Below, piece after piece: positions 1 through 29,300 of a stretch of DNA of 64,000 nt. Made by a program: the position numbers and the translations under genes. The DNA comes from Saccostrea echinata (lineage: Eukaryota), in the NCBI RefSeq assembly GCF_033153115.1, contig NW_026889759.1, forward strand, positions 3,100,001-3,164,000, in the 5' to 3' direction. Below the pieces are notes generated by a model that saw nothing but the letters and a program-made list of their open reading frames with translations, did not search any database and was not told the origin of the DNA. Position 1 is the first letter of the stretch. Each line of letters starts with the position of its first letter.

Positions 1-235
1 GAAATATATAGGAAAAATCTTTAAAAATCTTCTTCTCAAGAACCACTGGGCCAGATAAGCTGAAACTTACTTGGAAGCATCCTGGGGTAGTGTAGATTCC
101 AATTGTTCAAATCATGACCCCTGGGGATAGGGCGGGGCCACAATAAGTAGTATAGGGGGGGGGGGAGAAATCAGGTGAAAAACAGCAAGGCCAAAGTTAC
201 TCAGGTGAGCGCTGTGGCCCATGGGCCTGACTTGT
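1..235 (+). mobile_element. 3' end of Helentron-type non-autonomous element (HINE) with ~170-bp satellite-like unit
   Basis: Unit AAAATCTTCTTCTCAAGAACC...GAAGCATCCT..GTAGTGTAGATTC...CATGACCCC, followed by subterminal CTCAGGTGAGC and hairpin GGCCCATGGGCC. Confidence 0.75.
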
Positions 236-1331
236 TTATATTTTACTCCTGGACATAAAGTAGTCAAACCGTTGGCATGATTATCATAACTAATAAACAT
301 GATTATCATAACTAAGCAGTGACCCCTCTATGAAAATTGTTTAATTCATGGTCACTGGTTTCAGGCCCCAGGGTAGGGCTAAGTTAGTCATATAAATTGA
401 AAATGCAGCATGTATTGAAAATGCACTGGCCTTTTAAAATCCTATTTTCTTACGGATATCTGGCAGACAAACTGTTTGGATGATTATATCAACACTAAAC
501 CCTCTACCAAAATTTTGAAATTCATGGCCCCTTGGTCCAGGGATGAGGCCCCGGGGTGGTGATTAGTCAGTCATAAATTGAACATAAATTACATCTTTGA
601 TAATCTTCATTCCTCATGGATAAGCAGGAGGTAAATGGTTTGAATTACTAGAATGAGCAGCTAACCCTTTATAAAATTCAAATTGTAAAAAAAAATTGTC
701 ATATGAGAAGTCCATACCAGTTCCAAGCAGACTCAAAATGGTCATGAATAGCCTGCAGAAACTATTGAGACTCAGGTTACTGTCAATGCCTTTGAGCCTT
801 TTGTTTACATTATAGAAATGGAAGAAATATGATGTAGTGCAGAACATTTTGTTTAAATCTTAACCACAGAGGGATTTGAGTAAGGTGGGACTATTTTTAG
901 GATCAAAACAATACAGGTACAGAGCTATACATAGGGTACATAGGGATATCCTTTGCTAAGTAAGACAGGATAAAATCATTCAATAAATGATTGAAAATAT
1001 TGAATACAAGGAAATCAAGAAAATGATTTATTTCTTTTGATATTTATTGAGAATCTGACTGAACATGTAACATCACCATTAGTCAGTTTATCAAATAAGC
1101 AGTGCTGGTCAATTCTTAGGCCACTCATAAAGGATCACTGGTGTAAAAAAAAATATAATAAAGAACATTTTATATAGATTTTCTGTGCATTTCTATAAAG
1201 AGTACCAAAACTTACAAGATTCTGATGATGATGATTTTAATTCATGAACAACAATAAACAACAGGTTTTAATAACAACGAACACAGTCCTAATGGTATCT
1301 CAAGTTATCACAACTGTAAACTGTATATCTG

Positions 1332-4300
1332 TTACACGGATATCTGAGCAAATCTGTACTGCAGTGTTCGGGGATTTCTAATTAAAACAAGATTCCGCTG
1401 ATAAGGTAGAGATTGATGTAGTTTTTCTAAACCTAGCAGGGAACAGAATCCCTTCCCAGCTCCCTGCCCACTGCTTAATGAAAATCCACCATGCTTAATA
1501 TACCCAATGACTTCCCTATCACCATCATCTACACTCTCCAAGTTGTCTGCTTTAATCTCTGGTGTCTTTTTTGGTGGTAGATTTAAGATACCTTTCTTAA
1601 ATAGTTTCGCTTTTCTTCTTTTCTCTTTCTTTTCCTCTTGCTGAGGGTCTGTTTGTTGAAGTTTAATTGGTCCAACAAAAAACCCGTCAGCTTTCATTCT
1701 ATTGACATCTTCCTTTGTTGGTATGGAGATAGTTCCCATTTCTTCAGGACAGCCTTTGGAATTCATCGCTATTTTGACGTAAACCAATGATTGTTTGTGT
1801 CTACTAATGATGTCTTTGAAGGAGGCATGCGATTCCTCATCAATTCTATCTTTCAAACATTTCTTGTTTTTCCCAGAAGCAATATTAAATACTTTCCTCA
1901 AGGTTTTGAGATCATTTTTTTCTCTTAACACATAAAAATCCTTGCTATCATCTTTCTCATCAACCAGTTCATTCCATGCCCAACTGAATGGGTGAACCAC
2001 ACCTAACTTGGTGAAGTTTGGTCTTTTGGCAGGAGGTCGTCTGCTATGCTCAGCCTCTTTTTCACTCTTTATCCTGTTTTCTTCTGCTTGTCCTGCTGCT
2101 GTATCTGGGAAATCTTCTGGAAAGTGTTCACCCTGTTGTTCATTGGCCAGGCATTGTAATTCACGCAAACCTCCTGCTCTTGCCCCATGATAGATACTGG
2201 CTATCCAGAATGCCATGCTCCATCCTGCAGGAAGGACTAGATCCCATCCACTCCCATAGTGACTGTGGTTCATGTCTGTGGGATTGATTCCTTCTTTCTG
2301 AATGAGAAGAACAGGAATCCTACTTTCATCTTCCCCTAGTATTAACTCTGTCCCTAAAATAATGTACCATAAAAAATCAATATCAATTATGGTAAAAACA
2401 TGTTATGAGTCTGTGTAATCAATTACAAAAGATTTTACACAATACCCTCCTTTGAGTAACTTGTCCCTGCAGCAAATTAAGAGGCAATTCCTAAGGAAGT
2501 CCAGATAATGGCAAACATACTTGCTTAACAACAAAATAATACTGTAAACCAACTTTTATTTGCAAGTTTTATGACCTTTTCTTAGCATATATACCCCCCC
2601 CCCCCCCCACACACACACACACACAAATGTTATTTAACAGTTTATTTATGTAGAATTTTTCATCAGTTACTAAAATTAGTAGTTGCAGATGGATTTCAAA
2701 CTGATGAATCATAAATAAATGTGGTCATGAATAATAGTTGGTTTACAGTACATGTATTATTATAGTATTACCTACAGAGAGTAAGTTTTCACTGAATCAC
2801 TGCATTCTTCACAAACCTGGAACAATATGTTCTGATTTCAGCTGATTGATTTCAAAGTCTGACATTTTTGTTGAAATCACTGTCTTCCTGATTTCTTCCT
2901 CCCATAAGGGCGAAGAGGAGATGTCCTGGCTGATCTTCAGTGCATTGGCTCCTGTATCATCAGACACCATGGGCTCTGAAGTTTCTAAAATTGATGTTTG
3001 ACAAAGACCATTATTACTCTGCTAAACTGAAAATTCAAATAGCTTTCTAGAATATCTCTTCAGATTGATACATACTAAGTATACCTCTTTGAAAATTGTA
3101 TTCTTTTTCAACAAAAGAAGATAGAGGAGATAGGATATACATTCAAACTTCGTTATCTCAAACGACATGGGATCAAAAAAATCCTTGGATATCTCAGTTT
3201 TTTCTCGTTCTCAAAGTTTTTTCTTGAAGAGATATCAAAGGTAAAATGCTAAAGGAATATGTGGTTGGGACTTCCAAATCACTTTGACATATCCATGGTA
3301 TTCGAGATATTGGTGTTTGAGATACCAAAGTTCAACTGTACAATGAACTTGTCTAACCGGACACCACTGGTTCCAGAGAAATTTGCTATATTTGACAACA
3401 TTTTGGATTATACAACATTATAAACAATGGCATTTACTGAAAGGGACTAAATATCTTCATTGAAATAGGCAAGATTTTGGCATACATGATATCTGAATTA
3501 GTTTACTTTTACTTTAGTACCTTTATTTGCCAAATCATTCCATTTCTTTGCTTTGATGACTCTAGGATCTCTGACAGCCAGACCAATAACACTATGGGGG
3601 GACAACTCTGCAGCAGACTGACAATGACACACTCCTTCCCAGAATTCCCTCTGCTGGTTAAAGCCCAGAGAGTGCTTTTGGTCCTGGAAGTACTGTTTCC
3701 ACCAGTGAGATGGTTCACTTTTGTTGAACATGATATCTGCTATCTGGAGAGTTTGTTCCAGAACTTTCTGGGACTCTGGTCCAATATAGCGATGTCTCAC
3801 AAGTCTGTCTTTCAAAGAGGTCATCAAGATCTTCCCAATCTGAGATTTTCTGTTCACTACCTTTATTACTTGCTCCTCAGTTGGTTTCTGAGTCGTTTCC
3901 TTTTTACCTTTTTGTTGCTTCCCCTTACCCTTGTATTCACTAAATGTCCTACAATTATCATCTGTTTTCTTTATCTCCTCCCCATCCTTCTTTCCAGTTT
4001 GAATCTCTTGTTTTTCAGAATTATTGTTTACAGGAGATTTATCCTTAAGTTCTGATACATTTTTCCCTTTTCCCATTTCATCAACTGGACAACTGACTTC
4101 TACAGAAACATCCTGTGCTGCACAGTCTTCTGTATGGGAAAAACTAGCCTCTAATTCCTGCCACAGTTCATTATAGGAAGCAGGATGACACCAAATCCAT
4201 AGCTGACGAAGAGGGTGTGATTCAGACGTGGGTCTCCAAAAGAAAGTGACTGGGCCAATGGCACCCAAAGGATACTGACCTTGTTTGTACAATACACAGC

Positions 4301-6163
4301 TACCCTCTCTGGTTCCTTCCAAATACAGCTTGGCTCCAAAGGTTAGTCCTGAAAATTCAGTAGAAACAACGTATATTGTATTTCACAACTTTATCTGTTA
4401 ACTTCAGGTAATTTGCTTCATAATGTAATTTGTTGTAACTTTTTTTAAATGTAAGAAAACTTGGGACAAGTAATATGTATTTATTAAGAAAGATCAAGTT
4501 ATTCTTGTTCATTATTAATTCAAGGAAGAACTTTTTACCAGTTTGTGAATTACACAGACGAGAGACGCCACTGAGAATATATTCTTCATTTCCTTGAACT
4601 TCTATACAGCACATATAGGAAACATCCTGTTAAAAAAAATTTCAATATTATTGATATCATCATATCATGTAATCTTTTGTCATAGGCATATACTGAAGTT
4701 GCTTTTTGTCAAATGTTATAAAGAGTTTTTGAAAAGTACATAAATTGAAACAAGAATACTTTGTAAAGAAAATGATGATGAATTTCTTTCTAGTACATAA
4801 AATTCACCCATCTCCCCCCTCCTTCCCCTCCCCCAAAACATTACACACAGTAACACATAGAGACTTAATTAAGTAATCAGAGAGTATGTTTAAGTTTCTG
4901 GGGTTGATTAAAAATATACTGAAAGCTGATATTGAACCCATGCTTACTATCATTTGACAATGATGTTGAGTTGCCCTGTAAGATGCTCGAGAACTTTTAT
5001 CTGTTGGTTGGTAAGGAATTCTGTAACCCCATTTTTCTACCATTTTGAATCGTTTTGCATGCCAAATGTGAGTTTCAAGCCAAACTTTGGTTTTCTGGCG
5101 TCGAACATACTCCTGCAGCAAGTTTTTAGGTCGTCTTCGATGCCTTCTACTTGGTTTTTTGTGTTTATTAGCCTTTATTGTCACCATCTACAAATTAAAT
5201 CACATTTCACATTCATTTTCAGTGTATATCATGAATACTTGGGGGATGGGGGGGGGGGGTTACGAACTTCAGTACTTGCAAAAATTCCTTTTTAGACAGC
5301 AAAGCAACTGTGCTTTAATCACCTATACTATTACATTATGACAAGAATATTTTTTTACCATTAAGTAATACACAGTTAGAACTATTGCCAGTTGAGGAGA
5401 ATTGTAAAAATAAAAAAAGTCATTTATGGTTTGAATACTAACTGATTAATCCATAAGCATTAGAAGTACAGTAGTAGGCTACAACCTGTTAAAGTTGATA
5501 TCAAAATTACTCTAAAAATAACACCATATATGCATATCTATAGCAAGAGTTTTAAGTATTAAATAACCAATTTAAATATAGAATCAAGAAATTTGTCACC
5601 TCTCTCACTCTGTGAGGCAACCTTTTAATGTTGTGACTCATTGCTCTCCGCCGCATGGAAATAGACATCAGTCCATTTACAGCTTGGGAAACCTTTCTCT
5701 GTTTGGTGGCAGCATCTAGAAGCTGCAACTCTGCAGCCCTACACTTTGCATATTCAACTACATTAATGGCTAAAATAAAATAAAAAATAAATTCTATAAA
5801 ATCTTAGCTGTTGTTATATAGAAATAAATTAATTCAGCTCAAAAAAGGGACATAACTATCATAATAATGATGCTTTAACGTTTCACTTAAAAATATTAAA
5901 TTTCATTTATTATCTAAGACTTAAAATTTAAGTCTCTGGCACACATCATTCATAGCTCTAATGTATATCGTCTCTCTCGCTCTCTCTCTTTCTCTCTCAT
6001 TCCATATTTATACATGCCAGTACAACATGCACCTGACATGTACGTAGGTCTACTATAAAATTGTACCTTGAGGTGCTTCGGACAGGATTTTTTCATGGAT
6101 TCTCTGTTTCTTAGCAAAGTCCGCTTTCCCATCATATTTCCTTTTCTTACCAAACTGCTCCAT
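1332..6163 (-). CDS. POP1: Ribonucleases P/MRP protein subunit POP1 (7 coding exons, 870 aa)
   Basis: Exons 6163-6067, 5769-5600, 5187-4948, 4626-4539, 4348-3521, 2984-2817, 2353-1332. All introns are GT-AG with consistent phase, total 2613 nt. Hallmark motifs: [77 protein letters not shown], and C-terminal [15 protein letters not shown]. Confidence 0.96.
2540..2750. mobile_element. MITE with TIR TACTGTAAACCAACT
   Basis: Left tactgtaaaccaact, right agttggtttacagta; internal poly-C/(CA)n. Confidence 0.6.
3138..3340. mobile_element. Tc1/mariner(pogo)-type MITE
   Basis: TA-CATTCAAACTTCGTTATCTCAAA ... TTTGAGATACCAAAGTTCAACTG-TA. A related copy lies at 27683-27862. Confidence 0.6.
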
Positions 6164-6514
6164 GTCAGTCTTTTTTTTTAATAGCAAATTTTAAGCTCGA
6201 TCATGCAAGGTGGTTCTTCGTATGGGCGCAGACATCTTGAAAAAAAAATAAATGAGAAAAGAAACGCGTCAAAATTATTTTTTTCCGGATGATGTTTTCA
6301 TATATCTTAGCAATAAATGCCTAGAGAGGATTATAGAAAAACTCACTGTTATATGAAAAATCTTATTAACCATATATTATCTTTTTTCCCCTTTTTTCGT
6401 ACAGATATAGCCGAGGAAGCCGGTTCAGATCTTCGTTCATTTTATAACCTACTTTCATTTTCACTTTTCCTTCTTTTGGACCGTCAACACGTTGATAAGA
6501 TACGTATGCTAAAA
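6164..6514. promoter_or_regulatory. Bidirectional promoter/5'UTR region shared by POP1 and RIDA
   Basis: Only 351 bp separate the two divergent start codons. ETS-like CCGGAA core on the minus strand near 6282-6288 and a TISU/YY1-like CAAGATGTCTGC on the minus strand near 6228-6239. Confidence 0.75.
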
Positions 6515-9500
6515 ATGTCAGGCTTCGTAAGACGAATAATCCAGACAGCAAAAGCACCATCGGCTATAGGGCCATACAGGTGATTTTTTTTTTTCTGTGA
6601 CTGATTCCTGACAATTTGTGTTTCATCTGATAGGCCTAATGATATTTAACCTTTAGAACTGCTCTCTGACCTTAGCAGGTCCATCAGTATATTTACGTTT
6701 AGCTTTATTTAGCTATTCAAAAAAGTTTGATTTAGCTATTTTTATGCAGTTTAATACATGTTTCCCTTTTTTTTTTTTGAAATAAACAAAAATTTTGATA
6801 GTAACAGTAACTACTAATATTTGTACTAACTGTATAGCTGTATAAAAAAGCAACCCAGAGCAAAGATAGTCAGCTTTTGAACACTGATTAAGAACTAGTC
6901 TTATTCAGATTGATATGAAGATTCCTTAAAATAGGAATAATTTTATTAACCCATGCTTGCAGCTTTTTACGTCTCTACAAAACCCTTAAAATTAGGCCAA
7001 AATAGAAATTACCTTTGTTTCCCCTAACGCGACCGACCCACTTAAATCGTGCCGACTGAAAAGTTTTTTTTAATCAGATTATTGAAATATTTTTTTTTTA
7101 TTGTTAATCAACTTTATAAAATACAATTTCATCAAAATCCATTTTTTATCAGAACGGCAGCTTTTGTTTGGTGTCCACAACATGTGGCCACAGAGGGTTA
7201 GTTCGTGTTATAAAACAATGGTGACGTATTAATCTTATACATCTTTAACTTATTAGAATCCGAAACTCTCGAGACATCTCGTGAATTAATGTACCATGAC
7301 TAAGGAGTGTTAAGATGGTATTTACAAATGTGTCTTCTAAAATTTACGTACGTAGTACGCATAGCAAAGCCTGCCTCATGAGCAGATGAGGGGCGCTCTT
7401 TGTGAATACATATCAAAAATTTCACTGCATTTGATTCGTTTCGATCTAATAAACAGTTCATGTATGATCCCATTTTTACTATATAAGACCATAGGAGTTG
7501 TAAATATGTCTTTGTATGATTATTTCATCTTGATAAATAAAATTCAGATGTCGTTTCTTTATTCCTTTCATCTATGGGGTATTAACTCCGTGACTATAAA
7601 ATTAGATATATGAAACTTTAATCATTTAAGATATGGTTTGGTTGAATTATACATTGTTTATACATGTACACTATTTCCAAATAGTGTTGAAATCTTTAAA
7701 ATTTGCTTATGGTACGGCTTCCTGAGACGTCCAGTTTATATTTCTTTAGTTAGGCCCTTGAAAACAGGTTGTTTCTTTGCTTTAAAATACTTTTAGAAAT
7801 TGTTGAGCCGTCGGAGGGCTCCTAATTTAGACTTTTACTCGGCACTTATGGCCATTGATTATTAAGCATCAGTAAGGGATCTTTTACGTGCCATCTACAT
7901 GTATACTCCGACACTGGACCTACGTTTTTTACGGTCTTATTCGACTGACCGGTCTCCCACGTCGGGACCTGTGACTTAGAATAAGCTCCTGAATTACGTC
8001 GTGACTCCAAAACGAAACACTAGAATTACTGCGCCACACAAGGCCCTTGACATTTTGTCTATGTAAGTAGAGTAGGTTTTAAAAATGTACTCAAATGTCC
8101 GATGGTTCTGTATTTGCGTCTTGTCTTGTGTTTTTGTAAATATTTGATTTCAATAAATTTACGCTGGCCTGAGATATTTCACAAGTTCAAATGAATAATA
8201 TTTGTGAATTAATTTACCATACATGTTGCTTCATTTGTATGATATTCGGTTTAAAAATCGGTTTCTTTTGTTCTTTCTTATTTATAGATATTATTCAATT
8301 TTTCAGAATGTATTTCCAAAACTGCTGTCAGAAAAAAAGAAATAATTTACCTACCTACCGACCCAACTTGAGATTTTGGGGTCGGGTTAGGGGAAACAAA
8401 GATATTTTTAATGATGGTCTTACCAAAGTATTCACTTCTGATAATCTTTGTTGAATGAGTTACAGTATGTTATTTACAGCCAGGCAGTTCTCGTTGAGCA
8501 CACGCTTTACGTATCTGGACAGATAGGAATGAATCAGGCAGGAAACCTAGTACCAGGAGGTGTGGTCCCTGAAACAGAACAGGTCAGTACTATTGGAATG
8601 CTGAACGATTGTGGTGTAATGTTAAGTATCTAAGTCCTTGTATGACCAATGGATAACTCAAGTCCAATCATTTTTGTCCTCTCAGCTAACCAAGATTTGT
8701 GATCTGCTCCACTCTTCTTAAAAGAAAAATTAGCTGTTCATAATCCTTGGTTAGCAAATTAAGATGCATTTTTGTAGAAAAAGCCAAACCGCAGTGAAGT
8801 CCAAGAAATAAAAATAAGCTGTTTGAACGATCTTTATACCTGTATATATTGTTTCTATTGTGTACAGTTGCGGACAGTGAGCTGTTTTAAAGTTCCATGA
8901 AGTTATAATGCCTTTAATCAATTAAACTATAATTAATGCAGTATATTTTTATATCTTTTCCATTCCAAATTTGTGCAAAATGATAATGATAGAGGTTTCC
9001 CAAATAGATTTTGTATACATGTGTAACTGTATATTTTATTTTATATCAACACTGATCAAGTTTCTTTAAATCAGAAATTTTTTGCATTTTAATCATTGAC
9101 AGGCCTTAAAAAATATGCAGGCTATTCTTGAAGAGGCAGGTACCACTATGAATAACGGTAAGGATTCTTTTACATGTTGATGATAGTGTTGAATTAAATG
9201 TACATCATTTTATGGCTTCCATGTCAAAATATACTAACACACCCTTCAAATTCAATCTTTGATAATGGTTTATATAACTACTTTAATTATGCTGACTCTA
9301 GCATATTTTAGTGAATTTGAGAGGATTCTGTAATTGTATTCAGAAGAATGGTTCACATACCCTGTAGAAGGCATTTTCCAATTACATGTACCAATATATG
9401 TACTATTAAAGTAATTAGTCCTGTATTTGCAAAGAGAATTATATGCAATAAATCTCAATTTCTCAGACTGAATGCTAGTTCTTACCATTCTGTCAGATTT

Positions 9501-12500
9501 CAATTCATTCAAAAGTCTACTGTACAAAATTGATGAGGATAAAAAAAATTATTACGGTCCCACAAGATATGCATGTGTCCTGCAGTAATCACTCTTTGTT
9601 TGTTCCATCTGTTTATGTATGTGGAGAAGACACTATGAACATATTTTTTTTCCAGATCTGTGGGGGTAAAAATTAACCCTACATTTTAAAAAGTGGGTTA
9701 TTTACATCATGGCTGTGTTCAAGATTGTAGCAGATAACCTAGCAGCTAGGTGATAGATATCTAGCTCTATTGACAGCTCACCTAGCTGCTAGATGTTAGT
9801 TTCATATACAAATGTTTTAGTAATAACTAATTTTGGAACAAAGTGAGCTGAACTCTGAGATGAACTCAAGCAAAAATGTGTATGTAAATTTACATTTGAT
9901 TCACTAGGATGGAGAAAAGAACCCACTTTATTAGCTCACCTGAGCTGAAAACTCGTGAGCTTAATTATCTAGCCTCAGGGTCATAAAACTAAGAAAAGCT
10001 TACTTTTGATCTCAGTCTCACTTTTCCACTATTAATTCCTTTAGTAAAAGTGAGACTGAGATCAAAAATGAGCTTGTCTAAGATATATGGCCCGGGAGCC
10101 TGCATGATCACGTTTTGTCCAGCGTCCATCTGTCTATCCGTCCATCTAGCTGTCCGTCTCTCTGTAAACTTTTCACTTCTTTCTGACTTCTTCTTAAGAA
10201 CCACTGGGACATTTTCAACCAAACTTACCACAAAGTATTCTTGGGTGAAAGGGATTCAAGTTTGATCAAATGAGAGGCAATGCCCTCTTTCAAGGGGAGA
10301 TAATCAAGAATTCGAGAAAATTTGGTGGCATGTTTTAAAAATCTTCTTCTCAAGAACAAGTGGGCCAGAAAAGTTGAAATTTATGTGAAAACTTCATTAC
10401 ATAATGATAGTGTAAATTCAAATTTGTTCAAATTCCTGAGAGTAGGTTGGGGCCACAATTGGAGGATCAAAGTTTTACATAGGAATATATTGGAAAAAAT
10501 CTTAAAAAATCATTTTCTCAAGAACAGCAAAACTATGATTATTCATATTATTAAGAAGCATTCTCAGGTTTCAAGTTTGTTCAAATCATGACCCCTGGGG
10601 GTAGGGTGGGGCCATAATGGGGAATCAAAGTTTTAGAAAGGAATATATAGGAAAAATGCTATGCTCTTGAATGTACCTCATATGAGAAGTGAGATTTAAA
10701 AAAATCTTGACATCACAAGATGTAGAATTTTTTGACATACAAGTTACATAATATTGCAATGTCCATATTGGAACAGTATTTGCCTCATTCTTAACATTAA
10801 AAACAATATCTTTACAGTGAAAGAATAAATTACAAGAGACCTTCATACATTTACACCCCACAGTGGACATTACTATAAAAAGTAATCCAATACTGTATTT
10901 TTTTTATGCACTGTATAGCTGCAGATCTATCCACATATATCCCTTTTTTCCATCATAGCTTTTCACTGATTATCCTCTGATGTTTAGATTTGCTGTATGT
11001 TGTAAGACATATTTTTTTTGCAGAGCTATAAATTTGATTTTGCATGGTATCTGCGTTCGGAGGGGTGTGATGGGGGTTGGGGTGGTGTCTAATTTTGTAA
11101 ACAGAGTGAACTTCCAGAAATAAATTACATGTACAAATGTAGTTAAAAGTTAGATAACTCTGTTGAGTTTATTTTGTCCGAGATCCGGAGCCCAATAATT
11201 GATTATTGCACCCCTATGCACCTGTATGGTGCATAAAAACAATGAGAATAGGCTATCCATTACAAATTTTATTTACCAATGAGCAATAAACTTGCAGGCT
11301 TTAAGCATTTTGCTGACTACTGCAGCAGTCAGTTTTCCAGTACATGTAATATGTGAAAGTGCTGTATATGTAGCATAAAGCTTAGTAAAATAGGTATAAA
11401 GCATACCCAAACAGATTCATAAAAATAATTTCATGCTTGATTTGATTTTATTTTCTGTGGCAATGAAGAAAAGTTTCATGCTGTACTACTTCTTTATTTA
11501 ACAGTTGTCAAAGCCACAGTTTTATTGGATGATATCAATAACTTTGGGGCTGTAAATGAAGTTTATTCCAAATGTAAGTATTTAGGTCTCTGAAGCATTT
11601 AAACACCTAGATTGTTTGGCATCAACTTTCATTTTCCAGACATGTCTCTTTGGCTGAGTCTAACATTTGATACTCTGTCATTATGCCTTTCACAACACTT
11701 TATTATTTATTAAAATGACATTCAGCCAAAAAATGCTATCAAAAAGGCTTTATAGTGAAGATAATTTAAACTATTTTCTTTTTCCTTTTTTAAAATGAAA
11801 TACATTGTATTTATGTCATTAAGAGGATATATATAAACCATGCCATGGAAATACATCAATCTTTAACAGATTTTTTTTATTACTCAGTAAACCCACGGAA
11901 GTATTTGTCATTGATACATGCAGGACAACTCTCTTGTCATATTTTATACAAGTATGCACTGAAAGGTTTCATACTAGTACTTAATGGAAGCTTACATGTA
12001 CAAACATTTCCATTATAGATTTTTAAGTACCATCCTTATATTTATGAATTTAATTCAAATTCATTTATTAACTTTCTCCTACACACTAACATTGATTCTC
12101 AATTCTGCAGATCAGGTATTTTCCAAACTTTTGCATATTTTTATTGATTTTTGTAAAAATATTTCAATCGGAAAAGACAAAATTAGGTCTGGAAAAAAGT
12201 TTTTGAAAGCATTGTTTATATAAGGAAAATTCACACAGAAAGTTTATTCATCATGCTTTATGTTAATTCAGTGTCCATTTCATTTTCTAGTTTTCCAAAA
12301 GAGTTTTCCAGCCCGGGCAGCATATCAAGTAGCGGCATTACCAAAGGTAGGACAATTGTGTAGAAAATTTTGTTACTACTGTAAAATTACATGAGAATAC
12401 CTGCATTTTCATTAAATATTACTTGTGATCCAGTAATTAAAGGGTAGATCAAAGATCTGATTTTGCTTAGATTGGTAGAAATGTCCTACTTGCAACTGCC

Positions 12501-15338
12501 TATTGAATGAAACAACTTTAAAAGATACACATGCAGTCAAGTTATTAAAGTCTCTCAATCATGCATTTTTCCCATAAACATAAAAAAATTAACATGCTTA
12601 GATCATTTTTATGTGAGTTTGTTAGTCCCTAGCAAAAACTGTTTACAAAAAAAGCAAATCATTCATGTTTCTGATTGTGTTTACGACTGTTATATTAAGA
12701 TGTTTTCAGTGCTTTCCATCATTGCATGCATAATTATATTGCTTTACACAGTTGTTCAGAAGGATGCTTATTTGCATGACAATGCACAATGTCCCAATGC
12801 ATCTAGTAGATGCTAGTGTTATCTGTGCTTGTGATCGTAACTTCCAGAGGTCCACGTTTACTCTGCTCACAATTTATATTGTTTCATTGGACTTTTGAGC
12901 ATGATTACCATTTGTTATCTTCAAATGAATATGCAATACTTTCACTTCTTAAAACATCAGTGATGGGATCAGGTGCCATGTAGGGGTAAGTATCCCCTGT
13001 TGACAGGTCACAACTGCTGTGTGCCCTTTGTCCTGGTTGGATATTCAATAGTCAATTCAGTATGAAAATAATGGCCAAACAATTGGTATGAAAGATGACA
13101 GTCAACATTTGACTTAACAACAGATTGTGTTTGCAAACAAGGTTATATCAGCCATAGAGTTTGTGAAATGTTGAGTTTAAACAAGGTTATCATCAACTCA
13201 TTTGTTAGTAGTCTGCCTCATTTTGAAAATTGCTTGAAATAAGAACATGCTCTTGCATATCAACTTGGAGACATAAACTCCACATGCAGTGAATAATGGT
13301 ATATTCCTACCAAATATGGGAAGTTGACAATAGAAAAGTTGAAGTCATTACAAGTATTATAAAGTTTAGTTGTTAGTTTGCCATCAGTGTCACTGTCTTT
13401 CTCAAGTAAAATATCCAATTAAGAAGCAGATGTGTCAGACTCTGTGGTGTTTTCTACATTTCATTTTGTGCCATCAATGTTTTAGAGAATTTTCTGTAGA
13501 AAAAATATAACTTCTTTGGATTATATTTTGTGTTTGAAGAAGTGTTGGTAAACTTTGTTATATATATTTGAAATTTTATCAACTCTCATGAGATATGAAT
13601 TCATTGGTCTTTTTGTACCATGAAAATGACGCAAATTATACCCCCCCCCCCTTTTTTTTAAAGATATTTCACATTTGTTCAGGTGAAATTGACTTTTCTT
13701 TTAAGAAGAGATGTTTTTCCATTGAAAACCTGGCTATTTTGCAACTGTTTTGATAATTTTCACAAGTTTTAAGTAATTGGTCTACAGTGTATTTCCCCTT
13801 TGATCAACCTGGTATGAACCCACAGCCCCTTGCCAAATAGGTCTAATAAATAACTAGAGTATTCAATGGAAGGTTTGTGTCACCTGCTTAATAACAGATG
13901 CAAATAAATTTAAGAGGGCATTATACTGTAGTTCATGCATTTACCTAAGAAAAAAAATTCCATGCATAGTATGACTATGATAGAATAAGAAATATGATTC
14001 CCCACCCTGTAAGTCTAAAATGAATAATGAAATTGAAATTATTAGAAATAACTATTTATCATTTTATTACGTGTTTATATAATCCAACAATCCTCCAACA
14101 CAGATTTCAGTCTGTCTTTACTGCAATTGTCAGTCTACATGATCCATTGTAGGATCCCGATCCCAGTGTATTTTGACAGTGTTTAAATACATGTTATAAG
14201 TTTGTGTGGTATAAACTGTATATCATACAGTTTCAAAGTACAGTGTCATAAGCTCATAAAAATGTGATATAAATGATAATATTATCAAAACCCTGCCTCT
14301 AAAAATTTAAAACATGCAAGTGAAATAAAACATCCAGAGTATTTTGCAAAGAAGGTCAAAGGTCAAGGAGAGGTAATCTGTAACACTGGTATTATGGATA
14401 ATATTTTATAACAAACTTTGCACATGCTAAATAGCATAAACTTACCTCTAAAATGTCAAAAATATGCTGTATATCAGCACTATCAACTGTTTCGAAATGA
14501 AGGTCAAAGGTCAAGTTCAAAGGTCATGAGGTCAGTAATCATGGTAATTTATAAAAGCTATAGTACCAAGCAATATATGCACAAAATATCAAATCAATAC
14601 CTCTTACAGTTCTCAAAATATAAGGTGTGACAGATGGCCAGACAGACCCTGGGTAAAGTGATCCCCAAGTGTCCCTCTGCTCTGCAGGTGACACAGAAAT
14701 GAAAGGCTGTTTAAGCTTTAAAAAGTATGAAATAATATAATTAAATAAGTTGGCAAAAAAAATGAAGGCTGAAAAGACCTTGGTCTTTCTTTTAATTGTT
14801 TATAGGATTTTTTCTCTGAATATTTCATTAAAAAAAATTATAAGCACTGCGATCAATATGCTAAATAATGTACATGTTGCTATAAATACATGCAGTTTTT
14901 GATAGACTGTGAAGCAGTAAAAGCATACAATATAGCAAAAACCATGAATAATTAATCATTTGTGTAGAATATGACAGAGTTCAGCCTGAAGGCAACTACA
15001 TTTACATATCAATGAGTACATTGACACTTCCCCTACTATTTATTGAGTATTGAGAGGAATATTTCCTCAAGGGAAATAACTCTGTTAAACATATTGATAG
15101 GAATGATGGTAGTAATTTAAGCAAGTATCAAATTTTCATAGATCATATGTCTTAAAAGCAGCCTAAATGATAACCATTAAGTTAATGCATTGTATTAAGT
15201 GATTATCAGTTCATTAATATAATGATTATCGATTATCTTGTGATGGATTCATATTTATATGGCTCTTCTCTGTTACAGGGGGCTAAAGTAGAAATAGAAG
15301 CAATAGCCATAGTTGGAACACTGGTGGACTCCCAATGA
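6515..15338 (+). CDS. RIDA: 2-iminobutanoate/2-iminopropanoate deaminase RidA (HRSP12/UK114), 6 exons, 135 aa
   Basis: Exons 6515-6579, 8480-8582, 9103-9157, 11505-11573, 12291-12346, 15279-15338 (408 nt, all GT-AG). Protein: [90 protein letters not shown]. The catalytic Arg lies in the PAR motif. AATAAA at 15524-15529. Confidence 0.97.
6995..8419. mobile_element. Non-autonomous DNA transposon with TTA target duplication (PIF/Harbinger-like) in RIDA intron 1
   Basis: Imperfect ~40-bp TIRs sharing CTTTGTTTCCCCTAAC.CGACC. TTA at 6992-6994 and 8420-8422. Contains a nested SINE remnant. Confidence 0.7.
7830..8045 (-). mobile_element. Degenerate tRNA-derived SINE, same family as 24808-25105
   Basis: Reverse-complement matches to TAAGTGCCGAGTA, GGCACG.AAAAGATCCCT and GGAGACCGGTC of the full copy. 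Confidence 0.6.
9931..10657 (+). mobile_element. 3'-truncated HINE with ~170-bp units, carrying a nested ~120-bp hairpin MITE
   Basis: 5' end TTAGCTCACCTGAGCTGAA, (GTCC/GTCT)n microsatellite and satellite-like units. Nested inverted repeat at 9977-10095. Confidence 0.75.
12780..13460 (-). mobile_element. Decayed Penelope-like retroelement (RT C-terminal remnant)
   Basis: Minus-strand translation TTESDTSAS*LDILL...DGKLTTKLYNTCNDFNFSIVNFPYL resembles the PLE RT motif T.LYDKRDDFNF.IVNFP.L. It contains stops and frameshifts. Confidence 0.7.
14340..14700 (-). mobile_element. HINE-type remnant (GGTCAAAGGTCAAG family)
   Basis: Repeated AAGGTCAAAGGTCAAG, GACA microsatellite and terminal hairpin near 14650-14695. 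Confidence 0.5.
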
Positions 15339-18300
15339 CTAGAGGCAAAACTGTAGTTTTTAAAAGTACTTTTGTCATCACATTATTGGGAAAATCCAAT
15401 ATCTGACTGTTTTATACTGAATTATAGGTAGAATCATAAGTTTGAATTTTATTGTAATTTTTTTCAAAAAGCATTATTGAGTACTTTATATTCATTTTAT
15501 AAAGACAAATTTATATTTTTCATAATAAAATTGTATTATGAGCTGGAAACATATTACTAGTTATTTTGTCATGAGGAAAAATCCAGTATGTGTGTTTCTT
15601 AATGAACATAGCTGGATTGAAGTGTAAGATTTAAAAATCTAGCAATTTTATTCCAAAGTAGTACAATATAATTTGCTTATTATAATAGTTTATTTTTTCA
15701 AACAAGGTATAAATATTATAATAAGCAACCTATAATAAAAGCCAACGTAGGTCTAAAAACAGCAACTGCAGAAATGCCATTCCTGTTTGTGTTCCTAATT
15801 GTGCTAATTTTGTTTTTTGGGTTTCTTTAAATGAAAATTATAATGGGAGGAATTTACATTGAATTGTTAAGAAATGTTTTTTTTTTTTTTTTTGTGTTTC
15901 AACATTCTACAAAAATAACAGTGTTTTATATGAAACCCATATAATAATAAGCAAATTGTACTGTATTTAATATATTTTATACATATTATAAAGACGAAAT
16001 TTTATTTTTTTAAAGGGAAAATAATATTTTCATTGAAAAAACTAGAAGATTGAAATGTGTTACTCTGACAATTGTCATGTGATGGTTTGAATTCCTTTGT
16101 GGCTACTTAGTATAATGTATAGGTCACGGTGTCTTCATGCAGTTAATGAGTTTACCTGTGGATAAATATGCAGTAGATGCCACTTTTAGTAAGAGTCTAC
16201 TGCCTGTGCAGATTTAGATGATTCTACTCAGTTTTTAGTTATAGCTGACCACCTAAGCTTTGACAGAGATTCTTACAATTCAAAAGTTTACCGGGTCATG
16301 CCTGCTCAACTAATCATGCACAGACAATAAAATTTTGTGAATCAACATGAAACTTGGTATAAGTGCTGGCTTTTAAATGTTCATAATTATTTAATGGAAG
16401 ATTGAAATTATATTCACTTTAACAGAGGTAATGGGCAGATATTATCAAGGTATAATGACACCTACAAGCTATATACATGTAAAACACTATTACACAGATT
16501 GAAGCAGCTAGATCACTTTCTGAGTGCTATAATCTGTCCCAAAATCGTTTTGTGTCTCTCTGTAGGATTTATAGATAGCTAGGTCTCCACTTGACTTCTG
16601 TATTTGAAGTGTTTCAGTTAATACTGGTTTATCTTCAGATGGTATTTACAATAGCTCAAATTTAAACATAAAACTGATAAAACCTTAAAATGTAAATGTG
16701 TATTGTTCATCGTTCTCAGAGATTCACTGATATTAAGGATTCTATATTATATTAAGATGCCTTATGTTAGCATTCAGGGACAATATCTGGCCCATTTTGA
16801 CAAAGTGTTTCTCAGGTGACAAACAGAAACTGCAGTTGATATACCTGTACAATATTTATACAAAGGTGTCAGTATAGTTATGCTTTGTTTTTTTTACATG
16901 GAAGGCCTCTTTAATTTTGTCCTAAATTTTACAGATTGTGTAAATTGAAAAAAATGAGCCTTAGTCAGTTAAGATGATGGAAATGTAGACTGTTTCTACT
17001 GAAAATGACTCTATTCGTTATGAATTTAAGAGACAATAATGTAATACAGTGTACATCTCCCAATCCTAAAATCACTTGATTTGCATATGGTGTCTTTCTA
17101 CACATCAGTTAGGCAATGTAGTTGAAGATTAAATGATAATTCAAAGAACTTATCCCCCCCCCCCAAAAAAAAAGGTACATGAATTTTAATTGGGAATAAA
17201 GAATTGGTAATCATAATAAAAAGGAGTGTGAATATAACATCTCCCTGTACCATGATGAAGGATGGGGCAGCAAACAAGTTGAGTTTAATGATTGTCAGAC
17301 AGTAACCCCCCCCCCACCCCCCCAAAAAAAACATCAAGTGATTAAAGTATGCTATGTTAACCATGCACGGCTTTTTGTTTCATGTATCTGTTCATTAATC
17401 TTATTCAGTGTGTGGGCTTGAAATATGTCCAAAGTCTTCTAAAATGAGGAAAAGATTTATTTGTTTAGAGTTAATTGAATTAAACAATTCATGTAAATTG
17501 GAAAAACAAGAATTGAAAGTGTATATAATAATTTATTAACTTTTAACTATATAATAGCCAGTTGATGAAATTAACACTTTTTATTACGCTGTCAATCATA
17601 ATTCAATTTCAATACAGTTAAATAAAGACAGAATTTAATTGTGACAACACAAACATGTCTATACATTAAAGAGTCCATCATTAGTAATATTCCAATAGCA
17701 GTGTACTTCATAGTATAATACTGGTATAGATCACAGTAATACATTTATATCAAAAAAATGCACCAACATTCCATGTTCTGCATTTTAACTCACACATTCT
17801 TCCTCAACTTTCATCCATCACAGTAAAATTGGAATAAGTCAGACTTCCAATAAATTCATGTTCATCCACACCATGTTGTGAAGACAAATACATCACAGGG
17901 TAAAAAAAGTAACTAAAGAAAAAAAATAGTCCAGGACGGATAGTCTCCCTTGAGTGGGCTCTTTTGTGTGTGTGTGCTTTTTCACTGGTTTAAAAGTTCC
18001 TTGCTTTATCTTTTTGAATAGTAAGAAATGAGTTTAAGAGAAAACTGTTTTGCCAATAAAATCCATTTTACTGATCCAGTGATACATAATTGAAAATGAC
18101 CTAGCTTTAATTTTATCCCTGAAAAGAAATTAGAAAAGTAAAAATCAATTTAGTTAATTGACAACTCCATTAAACTTTAAAGTTACTAAGAATTAGAGCA
18201 TTGATACATAGAATTATTATCATTTTTAATATAAAAATATTAACTTTAAAATGATACACATGTAAAATAAAAAAAACTCTGAGATTTATTAAATTTTTTT

Positions 18301-24182: not shown

Positions 24183-26335
24183 TTATTTTTTACTGAAATA
24201 ATCAGCCACCTGTGCTATTGTTAAATTTGTTATAGATTCATTATCAGAATAAATGTCTATCACTTCCAGCCCATCTTCTCTTTCAATAGCCTGTAAAATC
24301 AATCAATGCACACATTTAAAACTACAAGTTTTTTTTGCAGGTTAGAGGATATGAAATGACAATAGAAGTACATAACAACTTTGGTCCCAGCTATCAAAGA
24401 GCTAATTAATAATTAAGAAAATGAAATCTGCAATAATCCTGTGGAAATGTTTACCTTGTTGCCAATGACAACGGCATAAGGAAACCCTTGACACCTGGCA
24501 TCCACAATTCTTCTCCCGATTGTTATTGACAACCGATCATCAATAATTACCTCCCCTGCTGTTGATGGTATGTACTGTAGCTGTTCATATAGCAGTTCTG
24601 TTAACTTTCTGAATTCATCATCTGATGCTCCCTTCTGAAATTCAGCATCAATAAAAATCACATGGCGTAAAAATATATTATTATAGATTAAATTCTAGAT
24701 TAAGGTGTAATGACCCTCTGCTCAAAATTTCATTAAATTTTTTTTTTTAAAACTTCCCAACATTGGTTTTCATCTTTAATTATAGCAATAGATTCAAATG
24801 GAAAACATTGCCCACGTGGTGCAGTGGTTAGAGCGTCTGCTCTAGAGGCGCGAAGTAAGGAGTTGATCCTTACGTCGCGGGTTCAAATCCCACTGTGGGT
24901 CATGGAGACCGGTCCTTCGGATGAGACCATATAAACCGAGTTCCCATGTCGCAGTAGGTGCTGGCACGAAAAAGATCCCTCACTGCTCAATGGCTGTAAG
25001 TGCCGAGTATAGGATAAAATTTGCAGCTCTCCGGAGGCAACTGGTGGCATCTCTGTATGAGTGAAAAATTCTCGAGAGGGACATTAAACAACATACAAAC
25101 AAACATCAAATGGAAAACAGTATGAGGTATGAAGTGGTGTTTATTTTTTCAAAAAAATTTATGTATGACCATGATATGAAGAAAGTTTGAAGCAGAGAAT
25201 TGGAAGAGCAACAAATTATAATCATTTACATAAAATTTTAAAATTTGAGGTTTATATGAAAATCGTACTTAGTGTCATACATATTAAATTCATATTAGAA
25301 AACATAATAAAACAGAATATCAGATTTTAATCTGTGCTTGAAAAAAAAAATGCATCCTTCAACGAGTTATCTTTCTTTAAAATATTTTTAACAAGGAAAA
25401 AAATTGTATTAATAATGAAAATTCTTTAAATGGTACATGATGCATTACTGCAGTTTTAAACTGGAAAAAAGGATAGAACTATATAATTTGTAAGTGTTAA
25501 AAATCTGGATGCAAATGTTTTAGGTCAATTAGAATCAAAAACTATGAAAAATATAGGCAGAAGAAAATAGAACTCAATGTTTCCTCCTACATGTATGCTG
25601 GTTTTAATTGAATTGACTATTTGAAGGTCTCCACTACTTAACTCTGTTATGACAAGCTATGGGTAATTTCATGATTATTTACTTGGGGAGTTATCTCTCT
25701 TATCAGAGGGTAACCCCCTTAAATCAAATGCCTATTAAGATAGCATGCTTTCAGTTTTGCATAAAAATCACACTGCTGTAAAAATTAAATATGCATACAT
25801 TTCTATAATTGTCTGAATCACTGTATTGAATTCAAGTTAACAGAACCCCCCTGCAATCTCAAACTAACAAATTACACAAAAAAACATCCACTCTGAATGA
25901 CTCAAAATTTTCATTTTGAACTTTTTTAAAACATAAAATGCCACAACATTTAATGTTTGATATCAATTGAACTGTAAATGTGAATTTGTGCAAACTACAG
26001 GTGTTTGGTTTCAATTAAATCTGTATTCTAAATATCTTACCTAGAATTCATTAAAAAATATCCTATCATACACAAACCCTTTTCTTTTTATCATTAAATG
26101 ATTGTTATGTGAACAAGAAGTTTGTGAAAGAATTATCTCTTTCTGTAGTCAGTGTTTACCGTAGAAGGGATGAATGGCTCATGCTGCAGGCATAGCCCCA
26201 TTAGCCAGCATAACCCATTTCCACCTCCTACGACAGGGACATGGGGCTTAGACTTTAGGAGGTGAATGAATTATCAATAAAGCTATAAATATTAAACACT
26301 GCAAATGCCTCCACTCCCTCCTCAGCAATTCTTCT

Positions 26336-26366
<31 letters not shown>

Positions 26367-29300
26367 AGACAAACCTTTTGTGGTATAATCACTATCTGAT
26401 ATGGTGCAATCAATCTGGGCCATTTGATGTGTTTCCCATCACTCTGTACTTCTACGGAGGCCTGTAAAAGCCTAGACACACCCATACCATAGCATCCCAT
26501 CTCAAGCACCCTGAAAATAGTCCAGTATTTAATCCGTAGTCTATACACAGTAAAAATATCAATCTGGACACTACTTGCATGATTTGTACTTATGGTGCTA
26601 CAAGTTTAATTGACAAATTGTTAAAAAGAATTATTTAGAATGAATAAAGTCTTTTCTCACTTCATTTTCTGATCTTCTGCTCTATACATGGCCCCCAAAG
26701 GTTTTGAGTATTTTTGTCCCAAGAGGAATGCATGGCCTACCTAGATATGTTAATATATAACTTAAATTGCAAACAACTTACACCTAAAAAAATAATATGT
26801 TAACTGCAACAAATGATAAGTAATTGCAAAAATAAGGAAAAAGTCAGCTCTATTTATCCATACTACTGAGAGATACATTTTTTTAATGATGTGATAATTT
26901 TCAGTAGTACAACATCTAATATGATTTGAAGATCTGTCTTGAGCTATGGTAACTCTTAGTCAAAGTCAAGTGTAGTATTATTGTCCTAGAAATCAAACAA
27001 GTTCCAATACTGATCAAGCAAATGCCTGCATGTATTCTAGATCTGCTGTTTGAAGTTGCATATAATTATGAGAAGGTTTGAGAGATTTGTTTTTTACCTC
27101 TATGGCATTAAATGATTCCAGTCTATTGGATTTACAAGATGAACATTCGTCTTCTTTTTCTTGTTAAAAGAAAGAAGGAAAAAAGCTTGACATAGTAAAA
27201 CATGCTTATAGTGAACATTCAAATATACATGTAATGAATTTACACTTACAGTGAAATGATTTTTGTTCCTTGTGGTTTTAAAAATTTTGTGTAATATTGT
27301 GAATTTAACAGATATAACAAATTATGTTTACAATGAAGCAAAATTGTCTGTCCCTGGCCTTTGCTATAAGCGTGTTTACTGTACAAGTATCAACCTATTC
27401 ATAATATATGACACAAAAACTGAAATTTAAGGTTCATCAACACTCTGATAAGAGAGATAACTCTTACTGGTATGATTGATTGACTATTTCATGTATTCCT
27501 TTACAGAATTGTCAAAATGCAATTTCAATCTGACCAATTTTGCACTGTAAGGTATGCTGAAATAATGTGCAATTTAATTATCAATCAAATTCTTTTGGAA
27601 AATTGTGAGCATTTAAAACAAAATTTTAAAAGAGTGAATAGAAGGCTCATGAACCTTAAGAATAAGCACAGGTATTTGGTAATACAGTTGAACTTCGATA
27701 TCTAGAACATGGATATCTTGAATACCATGGATATGTCGAAGTATTTGGGAAGTCCTAACCATGTATTTCTCAAGTATTTTCCCCTCGATATCTCGAACCC
27801 TCAGATATCTCGAAGTTTTTTCTTGGTCCCATCGAGTTTGAGATAATGAGGTTTGAATGTATAAGGGGTTTCAAATGATTATCAACTTATTCACTGATGG
27901 AAAAATGGAATTACATTATACATTTAATAGCATGTCAATGGCATGCATCCAAATTTGGACATGACACTATCATGTTTACAAATAAATAAAAGCAGTTACA
28001 TGATATTCTAAACATACAGTGATAACTGAACATAAACATACCTAGAACTTCTTTATTACCACTGTACCCACAACTGAAAGAAAGCAAAGGCAAGAATTTA
28101 AAGCTGCCATTAGTATACATCATGTATGAACAAACTTTTCACAGCTAAACTTTAGAATAGTATCTCAAACTCTCCAGTATGGAGGTAAAAAAAATACCCC
28201 TGAAATATCCATCACTTTGAAATAACAAGTTAAAACTCAAACTGTAGTTGGCCAAATACCTCAGTCTGACTTGGTCCTGGTTTATGATATATTTGCATTT
28301 AATAACTCAAACTGCATTGCATTTTTTAATGTCTGATATAAGGTAAAAAGAATATGACAATAAATATTTTATCTCGACTTACTGTTTTGAGTTTTTTTCA
28401 GTCTAAGGGGGAGAACTTCAAAACAGTTTCTGATATAGAAATCTATCAATTGAAATAAATGTATTGGAAATAAAGCATATTATTGCAAGGTTTTTTTAAA
28501 CTTCAGAACTACCTGCCTGGTACAAGTGTATACTAGATCCTCCCCTACACCTGGACATTTCAGGTGAAACTCATGTGATTGAGACCCCCCAATCAAGCCA
28601 GTGGCTGCCTCAGCTGTAACAAAGGGGAAACACTAACAATGTTTATCTATAAACACTAACAATGTTAGCCTAAAAAACACTAACAATGTTCACCTAAAAA
28701 AATGTCAAAACTGAAGAAAATATAGCCACAAGGTTGTATTTGCTGTGAGTCACCATAAAAAAAATAATTAAGCATTCTGTCAATGTTTTGGAATTATGTG
28801 GGTTTTTTTTATTAAATAAATTGGTGTATTTTTGTTTTGAAACTTTCCATACTACAATTCAAATATTTTATAACATTGAATATGCCAAAATGTATTCTAA
28901 TAAGACAAACATTTGCATAAATCTCAAGCTCCAGTGACATCCCCAAATAGAAATAAATTATTTCCTCTAAAGTCTTTAGAGACCACATTGCCATGGATAC
29001 TGTAATTTACGGACTATATGACGATGCTTTCAATAAGTCGAAAGGCTATTTTTTTTTAACTTTTGGGGCCTTTTTTGTAAACTTGAGCCTTAGAAAGGTC
29101 AATTCTTTGAACAGGGCAACGCCAACAATTCTGAGGAAAAAAGTATTGACCTATCATCCGTAAATTACGGTAATCTAAAATTGGACAGATTCAAACTGAG
29201 CAAGAGAGTGTATTGATGAAAGTGAATGAAAGATACAAGACTTCTCACTCTGCAAATACCTTTAACAAACTCCAACTGAAGTCTCTGTAGAATTTTCTCA

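Follow-up and report, generated by a model that had tools for sequence, protein, structure and literature searches.

POP1 is the largest protein subunit of RNase P/MRP, and RIDA (also called HRSP12) is 2-iminobutanoate/2-iminopropanoate deaminase, a member of the RidA family. The genes for these two proteins are neighbours in vertebrates, where ridA adjoins pop1 and nipal2 with order and orientation conserved, in a locus that runs matn2, (rpl30, erich5), ridA, pop1, nipal2, stk3 (synteny section of Digiovanni et al. 2020, PMC7311433). Conserved neighbours of this kind have been described as conserved ancestral microsyntenic pairs (CAMPs). Nearly 600 are known, 54.8% of them are arranged 5'-5' in human compared with 26.7% of controls, and the main text of Irimia et al. 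2012 (PMC3514665) attributes such pairs to shared cis-regulation, not to a functional link between the products. A further described system concerns the proteins themselves: co-precipitation in human cells recovers YTHDF2, RIDA and POP1 together, and POP1 binds YTHDF2 less well when RIDA is knocked down (results reported in PMC11391272, which credits the decay pathway to Park et al. 2019). Here we analyzed 64,000 nucleotides of the oyster Saccostrea echinata (NCBI RefSeq assembly GCF_033153115.1, contig NW_026889759.1; hereafter the window, C10:3100001-3164000 of a 923 Mb assembly), in which POP1 and RIDA stand head to head. We propose, with a probability of about two in three, that the pair is conserved: two genes of broad need, inherited head to head from the ancestor of molluscs and vertebrates and probably kept together by promoters that overlap or share elements.

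The start codons of the two genes are 351 bp apart (6164-6514 lies between them; POP1 starts with the ATG at 6163-6161, minus strand, and RIDA with that at 6515, plus strand; positions are those of the window unless a contig or locus is named). Lying on opposite strands and transcribed away from each other, with ATGs less than 1 kb apart, POP1 and RIDA form a bidirectional head-to-head pair. Transcript contigs from POP1 reach 6217 (record 15 of run X3; record 9 of run X2 reaches 6178) and those from RIDA start at 6493, which leaves 275 bp between them (6218-6492). Since contigs do not give true start sites, the untranscribed gap can be no longer than 275 bp. RNA contig depth was 0 in the bin 6312-6462 in all four runs, and no listed contig covers these positions. 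The region between the start codons matched only itself in a search of the 923 Mb genome, and its CpG observed/expected ratio was 1.41 compared with 0.31 over positions 1-16000, which fits an unmethylated promoter in an oyster. A sequence-only reading of the window had called this spacer free of recognisable transposons and the introns nearby full of transposable elements, in agreement with our finding that the spacer is single-copy and that RIDA intron 1 holds a high-copy repeat. For this repeat (~1.43 kb, aligned over positions ~390-1825 of the query 6600-8450), a first look gave 2591 candidates across many contigs, of which 40 were scored as copies with 86-97% identity. Numerous transcript contigs, 90-95% alike, also align to it. 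An Rfam search gave no match in the window.

These features suggest how the arrangement could be maintained. POP1 and RIDA would be transcribed in opposite directions from one short, repeat-free, CpG-rich region, and their two promoters may overlap or share elements within a few hundred bp. A chromosomal break between the genes would then remove regulatory DNA from one of them, and the neighbourhood would persist, an explanation already offered for 5'-5' CAMPs (PMC3514665). We consider that POP1 and RIDA probably share promoter elements, and that their layout plausibly goes back to the ancestor shared by molluscs and vertebrates.

Both genes are well supported as to identity and structure (Table 1). 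The POP1 model (minus strand, 1332-6163) was assembled from RNA contig joints, from tblastn alignments to the database proteins P0259 (Saccostrea cucullata POP1) and P0001, and from splice consensus, and both gene models were searched exon by exon rather than as joined proteins. The seven coding exons of POP1 give a frame that closes at 2613 nt (870 codons plus a stop), with 75-98% identity per exon to P0259. Three of the five minus-strand open reading frame (ORF) pieces tested for POP1 matched Pfam families: POPLD (PF08170, 108.6 bits) and POP1_C (PF22770, 120.4 bits) in 1332-2273, and POP1_N (PF06978) in 4804-5187 (76.7 bits) and 5552-5728 (27 bits). No Pfam match was found for the pieces 3498-4322 and 6053-6187. 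The domains POP1_N, POPLD and POP1_C are thus present in that order (exons 2 and 3, then exon 7). Human POP1 (PDB 6ahr_B) matched the oyster protein with 154.7 bits and yeast POP1 with 37.1 bits. In a POP1 tree of 42 hand-picked rows (16 named or near-window proteins and 26 other relatives, with the rest of P0001-P0265 left out), the nearest database protein to oyster POP1 was placed beside Saccostrea.

RIDA (plus strand, 6515-15338) has six exons, and its frame closes at 405 nt, or 135 codons when the stop is included. One of the three plus-strand pieces tested (8448-8633, exon 2) matched Pfam Ribonuc_L-PSP with 30.3 bits at a cut-off of 27.3, and a RidA hidden Markov model (HMM) matched exon 2 at E = 8.9e-14 and exon 4 at E = 8.7e-4; the remaining exons are RidA-like by eye. 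Read exon by exon, the oyster protein keeps everything that PMC7311433 gives as invariant among active members of the RidA family, namely A14, P15, Y21, S34 and G35 and the P-A-R, V..LP and E.E motifs. The active-site residues fall at the GPY that ends exon 1 (Tyr21), at FPAR in exon 5 (the catalytic arginine, numbered Arg105 in bacterial and Arg107 in eukaryotic enzymes) and at VEIEA in exon 6 (Glu122). A second in-frame ATG lies at 6506-6508, three codons before the RIDA start and in a weaker context; both ATGs are inside the transcript contig that starts at 6493. An own-genome search with PF01042 at E <= 0.001 returned a single match, on another contig (C9:45249424-45249609), and missed the RIDA exons of the window. 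This search therefore leaves room for RIDA paralogues elsewhere. The C9 match itself (L001 1336-1668, minus strand) was rejected as a paralogue, as its 110-amino-acid frame looks by eye like a YjgF-type domain of a larger, different gene.

Transcript data confirmed both genes. Five public runs from two studies contain 24-28% of sampled words of positions 1000-9000, which is approximately the exon share, and RNA contigs of four of the runs (X1-X4) were aligned over 4500-9000. The POP1 introns 4626-4946, 5188-5599 and 5770-6066 were recovered with CT..AC ends in all four runs, and the RIDA intron 6580-8479 with GT..AG ends in three of the four (X1, X3 and X4, not X2). Contigs that end loosely at 4538 read on into ~4319-4348, within POP1 exon 5. 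These intron ends identify the contigs as spliced transcripts, and POP1 and RIDA are thus real, spliced, expressed genes. The divergent layout and the 351 bp distance proposed in the sequence-only reading were accordingly borne out by the sequence, by Pfam and by spliced contigs.

We compared the oyster locus with that of vertebrates. As there, ridA adjoins pop1 and has six exons (as in salmon, according to the gene-structure data of PMC7311433), and the flank next to pop1 holds a NIPA-family gene. The NIPA-family gene is found at C10:3076785-3079025 (L005 6785-9025) on the minus strand, 22-24 kb beyond the 3' end of POP1. A search of all 923 Mb gave just three loci of this family, so by our own arithmetic the chance that one of them would lie so close is ~2e-4 per family tested, with three families tested.

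Further support came from a scan of metagenome contigs (JGI and others) by alignment to POP1, in which 441 stretches matched, 307 of them encode a POP1 relative and 80 loci were kept. RidA was sought in these 80 loci by tblastn (with RIDA exon peptides and four partial RidA proteins), by two motif scans and by HMM, with the window as positive control. It was found in one locus, L025 (WLWI01006296.1, 9788 bp), whose minus strand encodes a Ribonuc_L-PSP exon (29.9 bits; ATG at 342) and whose plus strand encodes POP1 (POP1_N 61.7 bits, POPLD 109.7 bits; ATG at 587). The pair is divergent there as well, with 244 bp between the start codons. POP1 of L025 matched human POP1 with 167.7 bits and yeast POP1 with 27.3 bits, much like the oyster pattern, a protein search with it gave 81 relatives, and in the tree it falls in a large clade of database relatives attached to an animal polytomy. 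L025 probably comes from an animal. Elsewhere in L025, positions 5285-5794 (minus strand) hold a 169-amino-acid ORF with no Pfam family and weak pre-PUA/eIF2D-like leads (Atlas score at most 0.85), and an Rfam search of the locus gave no match.

Several observations weigh against an inherited pair. Among the 80 loci, 22 include the N-terminus of POP1 with 600 bp or more of sequence before it; 17 of these best match one fungal reference and five best match animal references (L019, L025, L047, L061 and L075). Four more animal-like loci have an N-terminal exon and ~0.9-1.5 kb upstream (L050, L052, L060 and L068). RidA was near POP1 in none of the 17 fungus-like loci and in one of the nine animal-like loci. 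In the animal-like group, ~0.9-9 kb of sequence precedes the first POP1 exon that was recognized, mostly ~1 kb, which is not enough to settle the matter; L075, with 9.3 kb, and L047, with 5.3 kb, lack RidA and are genuine negatives. The spacers of the oyster and L025 share no word of at least 10 bases, which at that evolutionary distance is as expected and proves nothing either way. The comparison with vertebrates has gaps of its own. The NIPA-family gene is assigned by Pfam at the family level, so that it is a putative NIPAL2/3 orthologue at most (the PDB holds only NIPA2), it lies on the same strand as POP1, and a thioesterase-like gene stands between it and POP1. In own-genome searches, the SARAH domain (STK3/4) was on another contig and not near the pair, and no L7Ae-family (RPL30) match was found on C10. 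Human POP1 and RIDA are presumably head to head at 8q22. The claim of the sequence-only reading that the layout is ancient and shared therefore stands in part: vertebrate adjacency (PMC7311433, synteny section), the NIPA neighbour and L025 speak for it, and its presence in one of nine animal-like loci and its reliance on an assumed human orientation speak against it.

Like the 5'-5' CAMPs in the main text of PMC3514665 (e.g., HSPE1-HSPD1), the oyster pair consists of unrelated genes that diverge from a spacer of under 1 kb and are shared by vertebrates and a protostome. Unlike established CAMPs, its conservation is known from three lineages (vertebrates, the oyster and L025). POP1-RIDA is not named in the main text of PMC3514665, whose supplementary list may hold it, and the two names have no occurrence in the available text of Davila Lopez 2010 (PMC2871058). 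Apart from the vertebrate synteny figure of PMC7311433, our literature search gave no description of POP1 and RIDA/HRSP12 as bidirectional or as deeply conserved neighbours; supplementary tables may list the pair.

The rival that survives best is chance or convergence, i.e., that oysters and vertebrates paired POP1 and RIDA independently, or that the match is a coincidence among all the neighbours of a genome. By our own arithmetic, ~10,000 neighbour pairs at 1e-4 each would give about one coincident adjacency per scrambled genome, about a quarter of these with matching orientation, and the pair is lacking in eight of the nine animal-like metagenome loci. Against this, a NIPA-family gene is also close, as in vertebrates, RIDA has the salmon number of exons (both comparisons with the locus described in PMC7311433), and in L025 the two genes likewise diverge from a comparably short spacer. 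We thus regard chance or convergence as unlikely.

A second rival holds that the products act together, with RIDA serving, by way of POP1, as the bridge between YTHDF2 and RNase P/MRP, and a common promoter co-expressing both genes as an ancient RNA-decay module. Mammalian RIDA is strongly enriched in liver and kidney and POP1 is low and ubiquitous, which counts against such a module. That human HRSP12 links YTHDF2 to RNase P/MRP via POP1, as the sequence-only reading had stated, is supported by the co-precipitation results of PMC11391272. Like the human system, the oyster has the same two gene products and YTH-domain genes (four exon-level matches elsewhere in the genome, the best with 180.6 bits, assigned at the family level), so that all three kinds of gene are present, and the head-to-head layout occurs in both the oyster and L025. 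Human cells are the only system in which the decay pathway has been demonstrated, and an oyster counterpart would be a prediction from the genes. Furthermore, the full RidA active site is kept, so the metabolic role suffices to explain conservation of RIDA without a link to POP1. The ratio of RIDA to POP1 contig depth was ~6, 0.7 and 10 in the three runs with both joints; contig depth is a poor measure that cannot rank genes, and this roughly tenfold variation is weak evidence against tight coupling. Shared cis-regulation, the explanation that Irimia et al. give for conserved pairs in the main text of PMC3514665, points the same way. In our literature search, no text joined the genomic adjacency of POP1 and RIDA with the N6-methyladenosine (m6A) decay pathway, and no invertebrate interaction data were found. 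We therefore judge an RNA-decay module to be quite improbable, and the stricter proposal that the pair is pre-bilaterian and held because an adaptor and the RNase P/MRP subunit it recruits must switch on together to be very improbable. Functional coupling is unlikely as the main reason for the linkage, and adjacency of POP1 and RIDA is not proof that their proteins work together.

The last rival, an assembly or annotation artefact in which the genes are not truly adjacent or one is a pseudogene, can be dismissed as next to negligible given a window with no N runs, two intact frames, both genes recovered as spliced contigs in independent runs from two studies, and a single POP1_N locus in the genome (exon-by-exon search, only best candidates scored). 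Nothing in our data spoke in favour of an artefact.

Around the pair, the oyster locus also departs from that of vertebrates: a thioesterase-like gene separates POP1 from the NIPA-family gene, neither an STK3/4-type nor an L7Ae-family gene is nearby, and the RIDA side holds other genes, including a reductase with an NAD_binding_1 domain. The thioesterase-like gene was recognized by an Abhydrolase_2 exon (75.8 bits, acyl-protein-thioesterase-like) at C10:3093784-3094035 (L006 3784-4035) on the plus strand. The NAD_binding_1 exon (47.4 bits) lies at 39059-39358 on the plus strand and looks like the cytochrome-b5-reductase type. Farther out on the POP1 side, a 369-amino-acid frame on the minus strand at C10:3064110-3065216 (L003 4110-5216) matched Peptidase_M14 (37.7 bits) and by eye resembles a cytosolic carboxypeptidase. 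The ORFs 26255-26548 and 29165-29491 (minus strand) read like pieces of a prolyl-tRNA synthetase, with no Pfam match at E <= 0.01.

POP1 relatives were retrieved with accessions from Amphiura, Sinanodonta, Mercenaria, Mizuhopecten, Lottia, Lingula, Mya, Nematostella and Haliotis. Exon-wise protein searches with RIDA returned two genomic ORF fragments and seven fragments or bacterial-like partial RidA proteins, and gave no RIDA protein of these species. Among the metagenome loci, L017, L060 and L068 (JAAUXV and JAAUYG) carry POP1 exons 62-79% identical to POP1 of the brittle star Amphiura, which indicates echinoderm host DNA in these metagenome-filed assemblies.

Table 1 Features of the POP1-RIDA locus in the window (UTR, untranslated region; P0259, Saccostrea cucullata POP1; 6ahr_B, human POP1).
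Feature	Position	Strand	Evidence
POP1 exon 7, last coding exon, stop 1334-1332, POPLD and POP1_C	1332..2353	-	Pfam; tblastn to P0259, 84%; AG acceptor above 2353; 6ahr_B, 154.7 bits
POP1 exon 6	2817..2984	-	tblastn to P0259, 84%; GT/AG splice sites
POP1 exon 5	3521..4348	-	tblastn to P0259, 84%; splice sites; RNA contig continuation
POP1 exon 4	4539..4625	-	RNA contig piece 4538-4625; joint 4625/4947 in 4 of 4 runs; boundary ambiguous by one base
POP1 exon 3, POP1_N motif	4947..5187	-	Pfam, 76.7 bits; joints on both sides in 4 of 4 runs; only POP1_N match of the genome
POP1 exon 2, start of POP1_N	5600..5769	-	Pfam, 27 bits; joints in 4 of 4 runs; 98% identity to P0259
POP1 exon 1, coding 6163-6067, 5' UTR up to 6217	6067..6217	-	RNA contigs; joint 5769/6067 in 4 of 4 runs; 77% to P0259
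Region between start codons, presumed bidirectional promoter 6218-6492	6164..6514	.	Sequence; single copy; CpG; no contig cover
RIDA exon 1, 5' UTR from at least 6493, ATG 6515, ends after GPY (phase 2)	6493..6579	+	Contig X4 record 22; GT..AG joint to 8480 in 3 of 4 runs
High-copy repeat in RIDA intron 1 (approximate limits)	6990..8425	.	Own-genome search with query 6600-8450
RIDA exon 2	8480..8582	+	Pfam, 30.3 bits; contig pieces 8475-8583; splice sites
RIDA exon 3	9103..9157	+	Loose contig end behind 8583 continues here in 4 of 4 runs; splice sites
RIDA exon 4	11505..11573	+	Open frame with RidA-like peptide; RidA HMM, E = 8.7e-4; splice sites, phase
RIDA exon 5, FPARAAYQVAALPK, catalytic arginine	12291..12346	+	Frame; splice sites; residue list in PMC7311433
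RIDA exon 6, VEIEAIA, stop 15336-15338	15279..15338	+	Frame; splice sites

If POP1 and RIDA prove to be head to head across many phyla, the pair would join the short list of gene neighbours conserved for more than 500 million years, and would be one whose products also reportedly touch in human cells. The RNase P/MRP and m6A-decay field would then gain a cheap hypothesis, namely co-expression and interaction of RIDA and POP1 outside mammals. Were the RNA-decay module real, endonucleolytic decay through an m6A reader, RIDA and RNase P/MRP would be an ancient animal pathway with the shared promoter as its genomic signature; if the layout reflects only overlapping housekeeping promoters, it would be one more ordinary example of a known phenomenon. 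The 351 bp spacer is in itself a reporter-sized candidate for an invertebrate bidirectional promoter.

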